64,000 bases of DNA from assembly GCF_963676685.1 (NCBI RefSeq), contig NC_092350.1, positions 60,512,001 through 60,576,000 on the forward strand. The letters run 5' to 3'. Each line of letters opens with the position of its first letter. Position 1 is the stretch's first letter. The position numbers and the translations under genes are program-made. The notes below the pieces were generated by a model. It saw only the letters and a program-made list of their open reading frames with translations, made no database searches and was not told the DNA's origin. Positions 1 through 8,174 of this stretch are shown here, one piece after another. The DNA is from Mytilus edulis (taxonomy: Eukaryota).

Positions 1-367
1 TGAACTCGTGATTTCATCTAGCAGATATAAAAGATGTATTTTTTACCCATACGACATCAAGTGTGCCTTTCCTTTAAATGATAGCCATGGTAACAACAGT
101 CCTTCTCCATTGGGGACTTCATTTATCGCTTTAAACCGATCAACCATCTTTTAACCTCATGTTTTTAGGTTTTTGGAAAGTGAATTTGAACATTAACATG
201 TGGATAGATATGTTGTATGGCACGGTACGACAAATCATGGACGGACGAATCGATAAAAGGACAGAATTAAACAAGTATTCTCCTCTTTAAGACTGGAGGT
301 ATAACATAAAACAGTAAAAATAATGTTAATACTATGCAATACATTTTTAATATCTTTAAATAGAGCA

Positions 368-3300
368 TTACTGAAAATCAGTAAAATCGAGACCACGTCG
401 AACATGTGGCAGTATTTTTGTTTCGTCTCTTTTGTGAAATTGTCTGACTGGACGAATGCCTCGTGCAGGTTCATTAGGTTGTGATACGTCTCCTTTCTTC
501 CTTTTTTGCTTTCCTCGTTTCCTTGACAACATGTCAAATTGGTGGTCTCTACAACAAAAAGGGTTGAAATACATAAAAAATACACACCATTTATATTATA
601 TGAATTTCTTTCTCAAATGTAAGTAAAAGGACAACTATATTTGGTGTATGGTTACCTTACATTGTTTTCATGTCTGTCGGACATGACTAATTTGTTTTCA
701 AAAAATATAAACAGAATAGCAAATTAATGTAATGTGCATGTACCTGTCTGTGTGGCAGTCCTTGACTTACTTTTCACAAGGTTTGATGCACGGAATGGTC
801 ACAAAGCGGACATATAAAAAAAGAAGATGTGGCATGATTGCTAATGATACATCTCTCCTCAATAGACCAAATGACACAGAAATTAACAACTATAGGTTAC
901 CATACGGCCTTCAATAAATTCAACAGATTGAAATTGCCACGTAATAAATCGTTAACAGCTGCGACTGAATGGCAATGTATAAAACATGTACTTACAATGG
1001 TTGTATTTCAGACATATCCCTAACAACGCCTTCTTCGGTGCCACTTTTCTCTGTTTCAGCATTCAACATATCAATCTCGTTCACTGGATAGACCTTAGCC
1101 TTTGATGTTTGCATGTAGAATCCTCTGAAATATATAAACCTTATTAGTCAAAAGAAAAGCTGATACCATATTTACGCTTAAAAAAACAGCAAATGTTTGT
1201 ACGAAGGTGTGAACCTCCATATTCAGCACATGATTCTAGCGTTGTTTATAATTCATCGATAATTTTTTTTCTGACAGCTGCTTAATACATTCGTCTCGCT
1301 TAGAAAAAGAGGTGTAAGCGAGAATTGTCTCGCTTAGAAAAAGAGGTGTACGCGAGATTTTGACGGCGTCAAGTTTGTGATAGGAATCATATAAAACAGT
1401 TAACTACTGATAATGAGTCATTGATATTTATTGGTTTTTCTATTTAAACAGTTTATTATATAGATTAGACCGTTGCTCTTCCCGTTAGAGTGGGTTTACA
1501 CTTGTAATTTGGGGGCCCTTTGTAGCTTGTGGTTCGGTGTGAGCAAATGCTCTGTGTTGAAGGCCGTACCTTTATTTATAATGGATTACCTTTTTGAATT
1601 GTTATTTGGATGGAGAGTTGTCTAATTGCCACTCATACCACATCTTCCTATATCTATATATCTATTTTCGATTTATGCATACCTCTCTGGATTTAGCCTA
1701 GCATCTAAAAGTTCAATGGCTACACTAACAGCTGTTGGGATGTCTTGTGGTGTCAGGACGCCCGTCCCTCTAGGATCTATTTCTTGGAATGTGCCAAAAA
1801 AGTTTTCTATATCCAAGCTACTTATTGCTCTAACATTATAGCACTGTCGCTTTACAAATGGAAAAAGTTGGACTTTTCGTTCAATGTTGGTAAGAAGTCC
1901 TTCGTACAGCACAATTGGTATGTTTTTGATATATGAACCATGCGGCGGAAATTTTGTAAAATCTACATCCTCTAAAAGCCAGTCTCGAAGTGATAGACGA
2001 TGATGAACTCGGACATCTACTGGAATCCCTGGTTCGTCGTCGGCTAGGTACCAATTGTAAATGAGACTGCAAAACTTTGCTTCGTTTATCGCTCCAATGT
2101 CCTCCAGGGCACGTGTTACTTTTGGACTGAATGTCGATTTTGCAAATTCAACACTTTGTTTATCAATAAGATCCACGGCCATCGCTATGTTTAAACCACA
2201 TTTGTTTTTATTTGAATCTTTAGCAATACTATGGAAAGCTTCCTTTTTTATTCCAGATGCAGGAATTCCATTTTGACATACGAGTCTTCGTGCTCCACAA
2301 AGCTGATGATAGCTATCTAAGATAAGAAAAAGATAGTGTCCCAAGGTAGAATTAAACTCTGGTTTTGAGTACCACATTTTATTTTTGATGCTGTTTTGGT
2401 TTTGAATATTGACATGAGCTCCAAATGGTGACGAAGAATACCAATCCTCTAACTTTTCAGCATAAATATTCTCAGCATAAAAACTGTTTAAAACAAGCTT
2501 TGGCATCTTGTGTATGCTTTTCTTGCACATACTTTTAAGGGATTCAGGATTCTTCTTTTTATATTTTTTATTGTGGAAAACAGTTCCATCTCCTAAACAT
2601 TTTGACATAACTGACACCAACTCGTGTTTTGGCAGTGAACTCTTGCATGTCCCTCCTTTCGATTTCAGCTTTCCTACAACAGGCTGCATACAAAGGACAA
2701 GTTCTGCTTTCGTGAAGCTTTTATCTATGGAGTTTGCATTTTGGAACTTTTGTTCGAACTCTTGTACACTTATGTCCCATGATTTCTTTGTCTTTCCAGT
2801 AGTCTGCACTGCTTTAAGCATATTGTGTATGTCAGATTCTGATATCAGCTTTTCGGAGCTGTTCCATGGATTCTCCTGTTCCTCGGAGGGTATATCAGTT
2901 GTTTTGTGAACTTCATCTTCGTCCATTTCTATATCTTGATCGTTGTTATTGTTACTGTCAAAATTTTCATCAATAGCATGATCATTTGTTTCGGGAAACT
3001 GGTCAGAAAATAAGTCTTCAATGTTTACATCTACCATTTCATCGTCCTTTAATATTCCACTTATTTTGGTTTTCGATAACGATGATACAACTTCTATAAC
3101 TTGATCGGCAACTTCTTCTGTCAAGTTGCTTTCTATCTCTTCTGGAAGTGAAGACATAATATCGTTTGCACGTGTTGAGTTGATTTCTTTCTCATCGGAT
3201 GTCATTTCAACTGTCTTTGTTTTGCCCGTAATTGATGTTGCCTCTTTAATTAGTCTCCTGATATTGTTTGAAACCATGAAAGTTTTCTCACCCTTAACTT

Positions 3301-4957
3301 TTCCAACAAGAAATGAATTTATCACCAACTCCTTTTTATTTACATCTATGGTCTTTACACATTTGGTAATGTTTACTCTGTTTGAAAGGCTCAAATAGTC
3401 TGAAACTGATACCACGTTTGCTGAAGTTATTTCTTTCAATATGTCCTTCTTTGCAAGTTTTTTTACGCAATCCCAGATCTCCTTTTGCAACTGAAGTAAT
3501 GTCAGAGGACTGTCATTTTGATCATGAACTGTCATTCTATACCACTGACCATCGAATGAACAGACTGGAGTATATAGTCCCCTGTTGTGGCATTCCAGTA
3601 AAACATATTCCATCATTTCTCTCATCACTTTATTTGATAGACTGTAACCTTTTAACCCAAATGCTATGGGAACTGAATGGAATTCTTCTTCCCTGTAATT
3701 TCTGTCTACATCAGATATCATAAATCCTAGGAATTCAGAGGCCCGTGTTCGAGTTAGATTATACGCAGATTCTATTTTTTTTTCGCTATCATGTAGTAAA
3801 GTCTGAACAGATTGAATAGAAATGGTGCTGTTTGGTATTTCATTTGACTTATGTCGACACAACAAAGAAGTCGATGTTTCAGAGCTGTTTCTGCAATTAA
3901 CTCCTGTACAAGATTGGAGTTCACATAGAAAAGTGACGTTGTTTTTAATAAAGCTGCTTATCTTATCCTGTAAAATAGGAAAATTTGCTGATCTCCTTGT
4001 TGGTCTTCTTAAAGGTGTACACGTAAAAATTTCCAGTTCTGTACATATTTCAGTCCATAAATCAGGACAAAATGTAATCTTCTGAATGGACGTCGACTCT
4101 GAAGTATAGCAAACATACAAAAGTTGATCAACATCGAGAGCAAACATTTCCGACAGCACTTTGGGCACGTAATATTTAGGTAGAGAATAGTGTAATCTTG
4201 TTTTGAATGCTACACCCTCTCTTGGAGCTGGACACTTTATTTCAACAGCAAAAACAGCTTTGTCATTGGCATCTCTACAACTTCCATCTGGACTAACGAT
4301 CATTTTCTTTCTTTCTTTCATCTCTACTTTGTAGCATCCTTCTTCATAGAAAAAAAGATCAGGATAATATATTGGTAAAAATCTTGAAACGAGAGTCGCT
4401 ACCGCATTTATCTCATTATCAACACCATGTTGCATTCTTTGTTTTACTGTCTCTGAAAACTCTGACTTTTCTTTTCCGTAAACGATGTTATCGAAATGAT
4501 GAAGCTGTTTCTTAAAGCTATCCAAACCAACAGCTGCATTTAGTGTGCTACCAGTCACAATTGCATCTTTTCTTATAGCAAACCATGCATCCGTTCTCTG
4601 TTTGATAAATCTGTACTCTATATCCGGGTGAAGCGGTTCTGTCAAATGTATGTAATTGGCTTGTATATATAGAAATAATTGGTTGCCTGTAAAGTACAAG
4701 TTGGTTGCTGCACTAAGACAGGACAATACGGACCCAAGTTTTGTAATTAGTTCAAGGATACCACTTATGCAACATTCTATGTCAAACCGAACTGTTTCCA
4801 ATGCGCTTATTACATACAGTAATTTACTTTTTCGCCATTCTTGTCCTGCCATTTTTTTAAATTTAATAAGAGCCATCTCCTTTGACAGATGTGCTTGCCG
4901 TAAATCCTTTAGCCTATTGGACAAAATTTCTATGAGTACTTTGGTGGATTCAGTCAC
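368..4957 (-). CDS. C-terminal part: YqaJ/lambda-exonuclease-like domain followed by P-like DDE transposase core; spliced join 4957-1683, 1124-996, 548-368
   Basis: 1094-aa ORF with YqaJ motifs QRTDAW..R..VTGS, MQHG..NE, VSPDG (D at 4286-4288), AVEIKCP (E at 4241-4243) and YYVPKV. Then SFDG (D 3551-3553), DSYH (2306-2317) and DIENFFG (E 1805-1807). Two downstream exons extend the frame: RGFYMQTSKAKVYP... and LDHQFDMLSRKRGKQKRKKG...DFQ*, the last basic and NLS-like. Confidence 0.8.
818..915 (+). repeat. Dispersed SINE-like repeat family A, fragment
   Basis: AAGAAGATGTGG...AAATGACACAGAAATTAACAACTATAGGTTACC shared with 33430-33530. Confidence 0.7.
1293..1358. repeat. Two tandem 34-bp hairpin-forming units in intron
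   Basis: GTCTCGCTTAGAAAAAGAGGTGTA(A/C)GCGAGA at 1293 and 1327; TCTCGC/GCGAGA is self-complementary. Confidence 0.75.
1455..1660 (-). repeat. Dispersed SINE-like repeat family A
   Basis: Reverse complement matches 19878-20080 (GGAGAGTTGTC..GCCACTCATACCACATCTTCC; GTTGAAGGCCGTACC). Confidence 0.7.
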
Positions 4958-4998
4958 ACAAGATTTTTTTTTTGCGACATCTTATTTACGGAGTTTAT

Positions 4999-6180
4999 TT
5001 AATAATCTGTTTGTTGTCGTAATTTGTCTATCAGATTGGTTACTGTGGTTTTCTCTTCCTTCAGTCTTAGCTGCTTATCGGCTAGCGTTGGAGTACCTTC
5101 ATATCCAAATAAATCTATATCTCCAAATTGATTACTGGTTGAGCTGTTGATTTTCTTGCCATCAAAACAAAGTTTGAATGTCTGATATTTATTTGACTGT
5201 TCAGCAACTTTATCAAGTAAATGCGGTACTATTCCCGGACGTATTTGGCTGGAAGGTACCGGAGATTCTGAAGTTCCAGTCACTTTGGAAAATGGTACAC
5301 TGTAATTAATCCTTGATAATTTTGGATCAAATTCACCCGGAGGTGATTGCCCATTTATTAGATCCCCCTTGTGTTTAGGGCCACTCATGTACCGCAGCCA
5401 CTTGCCATGGAACATTTTGTAGCCTATTCGCCAGAATTTGTTAACTGCTGAATTAGCATACTTCATTTCAGTCGTAGATTGTGTTCCATACCATTGCACA
5501 ACATCTAAAAACAATAAGAAGGCAATATTGTCCATGGGAAATGACTGTGTTGATAACATCTGGTTGAATTGAATCCATGTTTGTAACTGGCCTTGATTTT
5601 TCATTGCTTCGACTACTGATGGGATAAGTTTTATTAGTAATTTTTCATCTCCCATTTCATCTTCTTGTTCAATTTTGAAAGGTATATTCAAATCATCATT
5701 TTTTGTTTCTACATCAGATGGTTTCAACTTTTTGCGCACAGGACTGCAAATTGTGATTTTATCTGTACTCTTATTGCTTGAAATTTGAATTTTTAACTCA
5801 TTATTTGTAAAGTCTGGTTGTATTGTCTTACCCTCAGTTTTTAACCTATCCGGAATAACTTTGAAATTGTGACTTCGGAAACCATATTGTCCATTAGATG
5901 AATTAAATTCTAAATGTTTTATCTTGAGAATGGATAAGCTGTGATTTGATATTGAGTGTTGGATAACATCTTTAAAAAATTTGAATGTTGCTGAACAGTG
6001 ATAACAATGGTATGGATGAGTTTCTCTGTAGTGTTGAATTACGTCATCGAACTGTGGAAAAGTTGCATTGCAGTATAGGCAGTGGTGCAGATGGTGTTCT
6101 GATGAGTGTTGTGTCAGCTCATCACTTTCTGAAAAGCTGGCATTATAATAAGTGCAATGATACAGTAAAGCAACATCCAT
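4999..6180 (-). CDS. N-terminal part of transposase-like protein: 3 C2H2 zinc fingers (first degenerate) and first RNase-H strands (FDGKK, candidate catalytic Asp at 5161-5163)
   Basis: 393-aa ORF with CLYC..F.....QH...H and CYHC..F.....QH...H fingers; FKLCFDGKKIN...GDIDLFG resembles the P/THAP9 LxFDEMxI...GxVDLG motif. Ends 41 nt before the next ORF, which is in a different frame. Confidence 0.75.
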   Translation of the reverse strand: MDVALLYHCTYYNASFSESDELTQHSSEHHLHHCLYCNATFPQFDDVIQHYRETHPYHCYHCSATFKFFKDVIQHSISNHSLSILKIKHLEFNSSNGQYGFRSHNFKVIPDRLKTEGKTIQPDFTNNELKIQISSNKSTDKITICSPVRKKLKPSDVETKNDDLNIPFKIEQEDEMGDEKLLIKLIPSVVEAMKNQGQLQTWIQFNQMLSTQSFPMDNIAFLLFLDVVQWYGTQSTTEMKYANSAVNKFWRIGYKMFHGKWLRYMSGPKHKGDLINGQSPPGEFDPKLSRINYSVPFSKVTGTSESPVPSSQIRPGIVPHLLDKVAEQSNKYQTFKLCFDGKKINSSTSNQFGDIDLFGYEGTPTLADKQLRLKEEKTTVTNLIDKLRQQTDY

Positions 6181-6313
6181 CAGTACCCTGAAACAAAAAC
6201 AAAGTTTAGAAATGGCCGATCATGTTGGTTTTCAAACCATATACCCAAATAATTCGTGTTGCAAAGTTAAATCAAATTTGCTAAAGAGGGGAATTGTGTA
6301 CCATAATTGGCAC

Positions 6314-7047
6314 TAATTAGCTGCGCTATGACCGCATGATACGCCCGTCGTTTTATGTGTGAAGTTATATGCAATAATCAGAAATATTTTCTGAGATGGG
6401 GCGCACCATGTGAAAACCGCTATTCTTTTTTTACAAAAAACTCAATGACTCCAAAATAAAAGTTTGAATCATAACCAAAAAGTATAGAGATCTTAAGATT
6501 AATATTAATAAGAAGTGAGTAAAATTTTAACAATAATCATAAATAGGTTTTGAGATACCTCGCTATAAATGCCCTCCCCCTTTTGTTTTACCAAAAAATA
6601 AATCAATCACTCTAAACCAAAATTTTAAACATCACCAAAAAGTAACAGAAGTTTATAATATTTATATAACTAAGAAGTACATAAAGTTTGATGCAGTTAT
6701 AATACTTCGTTTTTGAGATTTTGCGCGACATGTTAAAAAAACCCATATTCCTGTTTCACTTACATTTTCTGTAACTCAAAAAGATTTAATTTGATTTTCA
6801 CTAAAAGGTTTTCAGATCGTTTGACTATTATCATGATTATAAGAAATAACTATGTTATCTTGTAAGAAAATAAGATAAGCTGTCCTGAAGTTACGGTGCG
6901 ACATGTTTATGCTGGACAGACGGATAGATAGACGGACGGACGGACCGAATGATTGATAGATGGAGGAACGGACGGATGGAAGGATGGACGGACAGACGGG
7001 TGTATACAATAATACGTCCTGTCAAAATTGGAATGGGCGTGTAAAAA
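6314..7047 (+). mobile_element. Non-autonomous Helentron-associated (HINE/DINE-1-like) element
   Basis: 5' ATGATACGCCCGTC motif, (GGAC/GGAT/AGAC)n microsatellite at ~6914-7000, and a 3' stem TACGTCC...GGGCGTGTA followed by an A-run; this layout is typical of HINEs. Confidence 0.6.
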
Positions 7048-8174
7048 CGAAAAAAAGGGAAAAAAATCGTAATTAAAGGTCAATAAGTTTTATTAGGATA
7101 TCGGCAAAGTCGATTTATTTGTATATTTGTCTGCCCCATCATTTTCCTATATGACTTTTATATATATTTGAAAAAAATGTATAGAAATCGAAAAAAAGAT
7201 ACTCGGCATTTATTATTATAAACATAATCCAACTCACATAATCCGATTTCCCGGGTGTTCATGTTTTCTCATTTCTTACAATATTTTAATTCGGTATACA
7301 CTTTATAAGATAAGTGGCGAATCTAGATGACGTATATGTTGTACGCCCCGATCCCACCTTTGGTTGCCAAAACTATATTGATTCCTGTATTGAACGATTT
7401 TGTAAAGCAAGAAAAAATCAAAATATTGTTCGACTCGCTACGCTCGGCGGTATGTAAAAGTTGTTCTCAATATGCTGTTAAAAAATTTCGGAATGCAAAG
7501 TAAAATTAAAATATTTGTGGTCTATAAGAGTATGAGTTATTATTTATTTGAATCTGAGACTCATAATAAATAATAGGCCTCTGTCCGGTGAACGAACTTG
7601 TTTTCGAACGACCCACAAAACTCCTTTCGAACGCTGAAGTTATATAATCAATTATAATGTAATGCTATTATGATTTTTTTTATTTGACCAAACCGGGTTA
7701 TGCATTTTGAAATTTATGACGAAACCGGGTTGTATACATTGACGAAACCGGCCAGTTCCATTTTGACATGACCCATTTCTTTCGTTCCATACACAGAGTT
7801 ACAATTATTGAGATGCTCATAATAACTAAATTTGCAATCTCCGTGTCAATATCTATCTTCCCGTACCTTTCTTTCCGTACAAAGTGAACAATTTAACGAG
7901 AAATTAAACAATTGCGAGGCAAGGTTCACTCAATTCGTCATTTTGACATGCATTTTGACTTATTTCTCCGTTAATATAGAACGGTTGTAGAAAATATTGC
8001 ATCTCACAATAGAAAATAGTTGTATATGTATATATATTCTTCGATATCATAAAAAAAATAAAAAGATAAGGAGAGACCTACCTTTCTTTTGTCTATTGGT
8101 GTTCCGTCATTGTGCCGGATGTTAGGAACCCTCGAGTCCGTGCAAATTGTACCGGTGTGGTTTAGACACAGATA

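Follow-up and report, generated by a model that had tools for sequence, protein, structure and literature searches.

The catalytic triad of the Drosophila P-element transposase consists of D230, D303 and E531; the element makes 8-bp target-site duplications, and its 17-nt staggered cut leaves long 3' single-stranded transposon ends (PMC7776569). Here we describe a locus of the bivalve Mytilus edulis at which a P-like transposase is probably interrupted by a complete nuclease domain of the lambda-exonuclease (YqaJ) type. The locus is part of a 64,000-nucleotide stretch of DNA (NCBI RefSeq assembly GCF_963676685.1, contig NC_092350.1, positions 60,512,001 to 60,576,000 of the forward strand), which was analyzed as a whole and is referred to as the window. 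Coordinates are window positions, with 1 as the first letter, and negative values denote DNA upstream of the window start. The gene lies at 368-6187 on the minus strand, and an earlier reading of the DNA letters alone, the original prediction, had described it as a P-like DDE (Asp-Asp-Glu) transposase with a YqaJ domain nested in its RNase H fold.

Nucleases of this type have been described in other transposons. In KolobokE, a lambda-exonuclease-like nuclease lies downstream of an uninterrupted transposase core, which has a CCHC finger after the first D and the core motifs VVADG, ADGDSS and CTNHLLRN (PMC9587614). Kolobok elements are further characterized by TTAA duplications, 5'-RR..YY-3' termini and a zinc finger between C/DxxH and the last E (PMC9587614). 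ISL2EU elements carry YqaJ in a separate open reading frame (ORF) next to a PIF/Harbinger-type transposase and have 2-bp (AT) duplications and GG termini (PMC4482050). As to transposon ends, the Transib terminus has the consensus CACAATG and the recombination-signal heptamer reads CACAGTG; a 5-bp duplication together with a CAC heptamer was once thought unique to Transib, which prefers GC-rich target sites, and hAT termini have G at position 3 (PMC1131882). In papers on bivalve genomes, YqaJ genes have been tallied among the recombinases or the endogenous viral elements (PMC10225492, PMC7826175). A P-type transposase that encloses a YqaJ domain was not described in the full-text literature searched, to which Repbase Reports and Dfam do not belong.

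Results

We consider it probable, at about 0.82, that the window gene belongs to a P-related cut-and-paste DNA transposon and encodes a transposase with a lambda-exonuclease nested in its RNase H fold. Structural comparisons were made with an AlphaFold2 model of an intact paralogue from the same genome (L025, residues 278-1477), which had a mean predicted local distance difference test score (pLDDT) of 83.9 and a predicted template-modelling score of 0.76. The Drosophila P-element transposase was by far the best structural match (6p5a_A; Z 30.2, root-mean-square deviation 2.9 Å), with 324 residues aligned between model positions 19..1198 and the roughly 370 residues of P 200..569. The next transposase folds scored far lower, with Z 12.9 for HzTransib, about 12 for RAG1 and 9.6 for Hermes. 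Model residues 227-445 matched lambda exonuclease (3sm4_B; Z 15.2, root-mean-square deviation 3.3, 192 residues), and the other exonuclease matches were LHK-Exo (Z 15.1) and 1avq_A (Z 15.0), the latter an entry whose title describes lambda exonuclease as toroidal. Foldseek gave a probability of 1.00 both for lambda exonuclease (E 2e-4) and for the P-element transposase (E 1.3e-3), with RAG1 at E >0.1. Because the alignment to P starts before the exonuclease and ends past the Glu helix, the RNase H fold appears to be continuous across the insertion.

The position of the catalytic residues was estimated from the same alignment. The first candidate Asp (model D48) is 29 residues from the alignment start, compared with 30 for D230 of P, and the candidate Glu is 39 residues from the alignment end, compared with 38 for E531. 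We infer from the model that D340, D469 and E1051 of the window protein, whose equivalents in L025 are D325, D880 and E1436, correspond to D230, D303 and E531 of P. The original prediction had named a comparison with the P-element transposase structure as the way to check its reading and had placed the YqaJ domain between the first RNase H strands and strand 3. The model of the intact paralogue matched P in that comparison, and structure, split Pfam matches, conservation and language-model neighbours support that placement.

The split is also visible, though weakly, in Pfam. Canonical P-like genes of this genome match PF21787, the N-terminal domain of the P-type (TNP-like) RNase H fold, over positions 3-136 in one uninterrupted piece. 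In the family described here, the match after YqaJ covers positions 52-132 (E 2e-5) and exceeded the cut-off of 24.6 bits in the paralogues L031 (24.9 bits) and L034 (25.4 bits); L027 gave E 0.035, and 2 of 33 other homologues matched at E<=0.01. A 90-aa piece that precedes YqaJ in L031 matched positions 2-64 at E 0.16, and PF21787 was the only family reported for it. Pfam searches of the window ORFs returned YqaJ and weak zinc fingers and nothing else. In the ESM Atlas, the nearest named clusters to the part after YqaJ (window:1676-3802) were all P/THAP9 (score 0.85, 177-181 shared features), a result that we treat as a lead only. These neighbours carry PF21788, the GTP-binding domain family, of which Pfam found no match in any family member searched (window ORFs, paralogues and other homologues); the structural alignment spans nearly all of P 200-569, GTP-binding domain included.

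The same genome contains 47 canonical PF21787 loci (best E 8e-25), among them several identical multi-copy sets with 798-aa open frames. Since PF21787 is uninterrupted at these 47 loci, ordinary P-type transposons and P-like transposons with a nested exonuclease coexist in this genome.

Conservation was examined in homologue alignments of 17 (A1), 58 (A2), 33 (A3) and 50 sequences, with a mean column identity of 22-26% in the three larger ones. The candidate DDE residues, DxxH and the exonuclease residues were 90-100% conserved in the 58 sequences, where mean identity is 23%. On the transposase side the conserved set comprises D and K of CxDGKK, GDxDLxGxE, ASE...DR, DGQ of SFDGQW, D and H of LDxxH, A...F of the KQS..A..xFS block, YNxR and E of ExFF; on the exonuclease side it comprises QR..W...R, TGS, G...E, SPDG and ExKC. 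The catalytic D, E and K of the exonuclease are invariant in the 58 sequences, and D and K of DGKK are invariant in the 50. DGQ, DxxH and the Glu are each at least 90% conserved in A2, and DxxH is invariant in A3. Conservation of the triad among homologues, on which the original prediction depended, thus holds at 90% or better or as invariance in the 58 and 33 homologues, and every motif that it had quoted was found at the place given (D at 5163-5161, D at 3553-3551, E at 1807-1805). The N-terminal W...R and TGS segment of the nested domain aligns with lambda exonuclease.

The features of the transposase are as follows, from the N terminus on.

5941-6081, minus strand: two C2H2-type zinc fingers (aa 34-55 and 59-80), weak Pfam and weak structural matches
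5098-5172, minus strand: first RNase H strands, LCFDGKKI (D340, 5163-5161) and GDIDLFGYE (5124-5098)
4628-5088, minus strand: linker of three long helices (paralogue-model helices 75-101, 112-153 and 157-198), which holds the stop and the frameshift
4145-4585, minus strand: YqaJ/lambda-exonuclease PD-(D/E)xK domain, PF09588, catalytic D224, E239 and K241
4600, ~4555 and 4414, minus strand: YqaJ motifs QRTDAW (from 4600), VTGS (~4555) and NE (4414)
4288-4286, 4243 and 4237, minus strand: YqaJ catalytic residues, D of SPDG (4288-4286), E (4243) and K (4237) of EIKCP
3533-3742, minus strand: RNase H fold resumes with ASEFLGFMISDVDR, PIAFGLKGYS, a helix and CSFDGQW
3742, 3670 and 3553-3551, minus strand: motifs after YqaJ, ASEFLGFM (from 3742), PIAFGL (3670) and D of SFDGQW (3553-3551)
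2320-3530, minus strand: second insertion relative to P, made up of a beta hairpin, an acidic stretch of low conservation and a helical domain
2306-2317, minus strand: DxxH signature LDSYH (D881, H884)
2164, minus strand: DKQSV
1840, minus strand: YNVRAI
1793-1816, minus strand: LDIENFFG, with the candidate catalytic Glu E1051 (1807-1805)

D340 and D469 (of SFDGQW) are the candidates for the first and second catalytic Asp; the strand of D340 has a pLDDT of 95 in the paralogue model and is aligned to P from residue 200. The YqaJ match occupies aa 125-271 of the second long ORF (PF09588; 41.7 bits, E 1.8e-10, cut-off 22). Going by the model, the protein would run from the C2H2 finger or fingers through a small beta-rich region and helices to RNase H strands 1-2 with the first Asp, followed by the three long helices, the complete lambda-exonuclease/YqaJ domain, and strand 3-helix 1-strand 4 with the second Asp. 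The second insertion, strand 5 with DxxH, the alpha-helical insertion domain, at the site that the GTP-binding domain occupies in P, and the Glu helix would come next, and a C-terminal domain and the tail of exons 2-3 with its basic patch would end the protein. In the second insertion pLDDT is below 50 at model residues 708-806, helices lie at 812-951 and the alignment columns are gappy; the insertion appears to stand ahead of the strand that precedes DxxH.

The helical region before strand 1 is possibly a P-type helix-turn-helix. Residues 214-307 in the model of the first window ORF matched P 134-198, the helix-turn-helix region, with a Z of 3.8 that is not significant alone, and no PF12017 match was obtained; a fold search of the N-terminal 393 aa of the window protein found nothing above Z 4.3. 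Pfam detected no THAP domain in the window ORFs, the paralogues or other homologues. The N-terminal C2H2 finger occurs about three times in the window copy (aa 8-80 of the first ORF, 5941-6160), with one unit degenerate, and most homologues have one.

The coding region of the window copy is broken. Two long minus-strand ORFs were found, ORF1 at 4999-6180 (393 aa) and ORF2 at 1673-4957 (1094 aa), and the gene model is as follows.

1683-6180, minus strand: exon 1, from ATG at 6180 to donor GAGAG/GTATGC
4999-5001, minus strand: premature TAA stop that ends ORF1; CAA in L005, and Q at the same place in protein P0002
4964-4973, minus strand: frameshift site, an A10 run that is 1 nt short of the 11 bases in L005
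1125-1682, minus strand: intron 1, GTATGC...TTTCAG, GT-AG
996-1124, minus strand: exon 2, GFYMQTSKAKVYP..., from splice sites and tblastn with the C-termini of P0006 and P0011
549-995, minus strand: intron 2, GTAAGT...TTGTAG, GT-AG
368-548, minus strand: exon 3, basic tail ...KRGKQKRKKG...KILPHVRRGLDFTDFQ, stop at 370-368

No simple splice joins ORF1 to ORF2, since ORF1 ends in TAA and ORF2 opens only past a stop in its own frame. An intron at this joint was rejected: no usable GT-AG pair restores the frame, and two close relatives read through it. One is L005, a 97%-identical fragment copy on the same chromosome in which the junction is one continuous frame; the other is P0002, a 95%-identical protein from another public dataset that is uninterrupted across the junction (...TDYQINSVNKMSQITKSCVTEST...). 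In many paralogues and homologues exon 1 is a single open frame of 1300-1511 aa. The CAA and the extra base in L005, together with the read-through in P0002, therefore mark the window copy as one ancestral exon that would have been broken by a nonsense change and the loss of 1 nt. Going by its sequence, a single stop codon together with a single frameshift has disabled the window copy. Its coding length of 4805 nt is not divisible by 3; with the lost base counted it becomes 4806 nt, or 1602 codons.

The two small 3' exons are supported by homology. The tail encoded by exons 2-3 matches the C-termini of Mercenaria and Solemya homologues at 36-60% identity, and in tblastn the exon 3 tail is 60% identical to those of P0006 and P0011. 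The span of 368-6187 given by the original prediction is correct, as these exons reach the stop at 370-368. Its single spliced gene of about 1600 codons also stands with respect to splicing and length (1602 codons), but the joint between the ORFs is a lesion and the predicted introns lie 3' of it instead, at 1682-1125 and 995-549. Intron 1 contains a high-copy repeat of about 210 bp that resembles a short interspersed or miniature inverted-repeat element (1452-1669), three bases from the old stop codon; at least 40 copies with 84-90% identity are spread across chromosomes, and a partial inverted copy is found in intron 2 at 806-917.

The gene is enclosed by a transposon that extends beyond the window start, with these features.

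1-8173, minus strand: part of the transposon within the window; the complete transposon extends from window -2910 (G000:C7:60509090, in L060) to 8173
7736-8173, no strand assigned: terminal inverted repeat on the 5' side of the gene, with the family consensus tip CACTGTGTCTAAACCACACCGG, starting CACTGTG
1-367, minus strand: 3' untranslated or subterminal region, which continues past the window start to the other inverted repeat
-1028..-465, plus strand (L060:8972-9535): convergent C2H2 zinc-finger ORF

The whole element is 11,084 bp long, and window -2908..-2473 is an inverted match of 7736..8171 (436 bp, 97.9%). A search for inverted repeats inside the first 10 kb of the window (L001) gave none, the repeats sitting further out. 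The terminus consensus CACTGTGTCTAAACCACACCGG was derived from 13 other copies. The genome contains 702 occurrences of it (345 forward, 357 reverse), most of them in facing pairs 2-5 kb apart, and the reversed control contains 0. The window family has about 350 members in the 1.37-Gb genome, mostly non-autonomous and internally deleted. In three copies (L015, L016 and L005) the DNA to the left of the window start is joined directly to window 7465-8171; the internal deletion of L015 removes 382-7562, the whole coding region, with a 3-bp microhomology at the junction. L005 (G000:C7:47331790-47335677) is rearranged and consists of window -1498..-1010, 4549-5435, 6958-7054, 7616-8171 and 6836-7466 in series. 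No second coding copy of the window's own family was found in the assembly by DNA and protein searches that scored the best candidates only. The sole window-family pair with both ends available (L012) is flanked by the 5-bp duplication ATTGA.

A sister family provides full-length copies. Two twins, L025 (G000:C10:43555361-43568854) and L026 (C10:55585307-55597933), are 98-99% identical and measure 13.5 and 12.6 kb, and their ends are perfect inverted repeats of about 53 bp that start with CACAGTG, the recombination-signal heptamer. Each has an intact first exon of 1477 aa that is 39% identical to the window protein. The 31-nt terminus of this family has 573 exact copies in the genome versus 0 in the control. 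Exact 5-bp duplications were found in all of 7 further sister-family pairs and in one of the two full-length copies (copy A); the other full-length copy lies in low-complexity sequence, where the duplication is ambiguous. Because of the 573 exact termini and the 98-99% identical twins, the sister family may have been active recently or may still be active. At least 45 paralogous loci are present in this genome. The homologues are multi-copy, with inverted repeats and target-site duplications, and so differ from the single-copy syntenic genes that the original prediction had held up as the opposite case, but the duplications measure 5 bp (in L012 and the sister family) and not the 7-8 bp that it had expected.

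The sister-family elements carry an internal array of tandem repeats of about 226 bp. L025 also has a counterpart of the convergent zinc-finger ORF (G000:C10:43564869-43565678, minus strand; 28% identical, E 2e-15). Both ORFs encode 5-6 C2H2 fingers and are downstream of and convergent with the transposase gene, and C2H2 repeats align easily. The convergent ORF may represent a second gene that these transposons have conserved, or the likeness may be a generic zinc-finger similarity.

Discussion

With the P/THAP9 transposases this family has in common the split RNase H fold, the alpha-helical insertion domain before the Glu helix, DxxH and the ExFF Glu motif, as well as transposase-gene introns, inverted repeats, many internally deleted non-autonomous copies and a weak PF21787 match. 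It differs from them by an insertion of about 470 residues between strands 2 and 3, made up of the three helices and the lambda-exonuclease domain, and by a second one of about 370 residues before strand 5. A C2H2 finger takes the place of THAP, the duplication is 5 bp versus 8 bp in P, the termini read CACWGTG and the inverted repeats are 53-436 bp long versus 31 bp. The elements measure 11-13.5 kb with a second, convergent C2H2 zinc-finger ORF, and a PF21788 match at the sequence level is missing. Given the absence of THAP, a duplication of 5 bp and no Pfam match to the GTP-binding domain, we classify the family as a lineage related to P rather than as an ordinary P transposon.

Its ends resemble those of Transib and RAG1. 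The duplications are 5 bp and the termini are heptamers, CACAGTG in the sister family and CACTGTG in the window family, but the protein is P-like and not RAG1-core-like (Z 30.2 versus 12.9 and about 12). No RAG1 or Transib Pfam match was found in the family proteins searched, and the inverted repeats show no evident second block of the nonamer kind. Target sites duplicated here are AT-rich, unlike the GC-rich ones of Transib.

The nested domain resembles lambda exonuclease, YqaJ and LHK-Exo in its fold (Z 15), in its catalytic D...ExK residues and in the W..R and T/SGS motifs at its N-terminal side. Lambda exonuclease is a trimer and, in contrast to the domain described here, is not nested in the fold of another enzyme; no partner annealing protein was seen in the element. 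In Tn7, the DDE protein TnsB works with TnsA, a separate restriction-endonuclease-like cutter of the 5' strand. Tn7 and the present family would both combine a DDE centre with a PD-(D/E)xK nuclease to process transposon ends, but in Tn7 these are two proteins and TnsA is not of the lambda-exonuclease type.

Several results weigh against a P-type core with a nested exonuclease. Among the hallmarks of P, the THAP domain, a duplication of 7-8 bp and sequence-level similarity to its GTP-binding domain are missing. The PF21787 matches are marginal, above the cut-off in 2 of 5 paralogues and absent from the window protein. A family sequence profile found no transposase among Protein Data Bank chains, with weak lambda-exonuclease matches only (E 0.3-0.5), and a profile of the part after YqaJ found paralogues only in the genome (E<=4e-19) and 0 of the 47 canonical PF21787 loci. 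The predicted structure is that of a paralogue 39% identical to the window protein, and the triads were equated by the ranges and end offsets of the alignment, not by distances measured between residues. The window copy itself is without an intact duplication, and its outermost bases, 8172-8173, are AT and off the consensus.

Some of these results would fit an artefact, in which CxDGKK stands outside the RNase H fold, the true first Asp follows YqaJ and YqaJ is simply an N-terminal fusion. The Pfam match before YqaJ is weak (E 0.16), the triad was matched by ranges and not by residue-level superposition, and co-variation in a shallow alignment, here one of 58 rows, can steer AlphaFold. We consider this highly improbable: model residue 19, where the alignment to P begins, precedes the insertion, with D48 as far from the alignment start as D230 to within one residue; the CxDGKK strand has the pLDDT of 95 and an invariant D and K in 50 sequences; and PF21787 is matched after YqaJ from position 52 only, whereas canonical genes match 3-136 whole. 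It is only a little less improbable that the element belongs to a named group and that its likeness to P is superficial. KolobokE (PMC9587614) and ISL2EU (PMC4482050) do encode lambda-exonuclease/YqaJ nucleases, and KolobokE has further in common with this family that the DDE transposase and the nuclease form one eukaryotic protein, that it occurs in invertebrates and that it falls in the C/DxxH signature group. None of the TTAA duplication, the RR..YY termini, the finger after C/DxxH and the downstream nuclease of Kolobok is present, however. The duplication here is a non-specific one of 5 bp, the termini are CA..TG, the nuclease lies between the first and second D, the consensus of the 58- and 33-sequence alignments has no conserved Cys/His cluster in the stretches of the Kolobok fingers, and the core motifs CxDGKK, SFDGQW and LDxxH are unlike those of KolobokE, which was rejected on all these grounds. 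ISL2EU is likewise a transposon with a YqaJ exonuclease and a DDE transposase, but its YqaJ is in a second ORF of its own and its core is Harbinger-type, whereas here both are in one protein. We also rejected hAT, given a Hermes Z of 9.6 versus 30.2 for P, the lack of the PF05699 dimerisation domain by Pfam and a C as the third terminal base.

The least credible reading of all is domestication, in which the window gene would be a gene of the host and no part of a mobile element. The gene has introns and is the sole coding copy of its own family found at the DNA level, but it lies between 436-bp inverted repeats common to about 350 other copies, it is broken by a stop and a frameshift, and paralogous families have 98-99% identical full-length twins, perfect inverted repeats and duplications. 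An alternative that we find unlikely, though well above those just considered, accepts the architecture and takes the PD-(D/E)xK domain for a TnsA-like endonuclease that would cut the second (5') strand at the transposon ends. Two conserved nuclease centres in one polypeptide would suit such a role, as would CAC termini and a 5-bp duplication that set the end chemistry apart from canonical P, and Tn7 may serve as an established precedent. The domain is specifically lambda-exonuclease/YqaJ-like, however (Z 15 to 3sm4, 1avq and LHK-Exo; PF09588), and it has kept the N-terminal W...R and TGS that align with the end-binding segment of lambda exonuclease. Endonucleolytic relatives rank lower, with Z 9.6 for Cas4 (4ic1_G) and Foldseek matches only, at E 0.17-0.7, for MGME1.

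For a P-related transposase with a nested exonuclease, we propose that the DDE centre would bind the inverted repeats, cut the ends and join the 3' ends to the target at a stagger of 5 bp. Beside this active site, the nested exonuclease would resect the 5' strands of transposase-made breaks in the 5'-3' direction and leave 3' single-stranded tails. The odds lean slightly towards such 5'-3' resection. We favor it because the domain is specifically lambda-exonuclease-like, with an invariant catalytic D/E/K and a W..R segment that has been kept, and because P-type transposition uses long 3' single-stranded transposon ends. In lambda exonuclease, the Arg of the W..R segment binds the 5' phosphate. 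The 3' tails could form at the ends of the transposon, where P-type strand transfer makes use of them, at the donor flanks, or at both. Resected donor flanks would favor homology-directed repair, which the original prediction had offered as a possible function, and so restore the element at the donor site, and aborted repair of this kind could give internal deletions like those in this family.

A bolder and rather doubtful extension is that the family is an unclassified, superfamily-level branch beside P, with a P-type core on Transib/RAG-like ends, an obligatory exonuclease and continuing activity in bivalves. An obligatory exonuclease would make the 3' tails that P obtains by its 17-nt staggered cut and would bias donor repair to copying; if the extension is true, bivalves harbor an autonomous machine that cuts, resects, pastes and is then copied back. 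The insertion of a whole nuclease between strands 2 and 3 points to an unusual tolerance of the RNase H fold and would place a second active site beside the first. End type and transposase superfamily usually go together; a P-like protein with CACWGTG ends and duplications of 5 bp departs from this rule, a mismatch that bears on the evolution of end chemistry among the hAT, P and Transib/RAG enzymes. If the sister family is active, it could serve as an experimental system for a long-standing question, namely the roles of accessory nucleases in cut-and-paste transposons and the way in which these transposons increase in copy number.

The protein family is large, with 1842 representative clusters at E<=1e-3 and 405 at E<=1e-30. 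Its named members come from the bivalves Mercenaria, Solemya and Mytilus and the annelid Owenia, and all are annotated as hypothetical or YqaJ proteins; for divergent members, a cluster look-up of taxa led in most cases to unnamed proteins from metagenomes or Logan. On present evidence, a large family of animal proteins that now carries no other label than "YqaJ viral recombinase" or "hypothetical" represents a P-related lineage of transposases. One 1018-aa homologue (P0020, 48% identical) was deposited as a protein of a "Candidatus Thiodiazotropha sp." metagenome-assembled genome. Because its homologues are intron-bearing animal transposases, P0020 is most likely host clam DNA that was binned with the symbiont.

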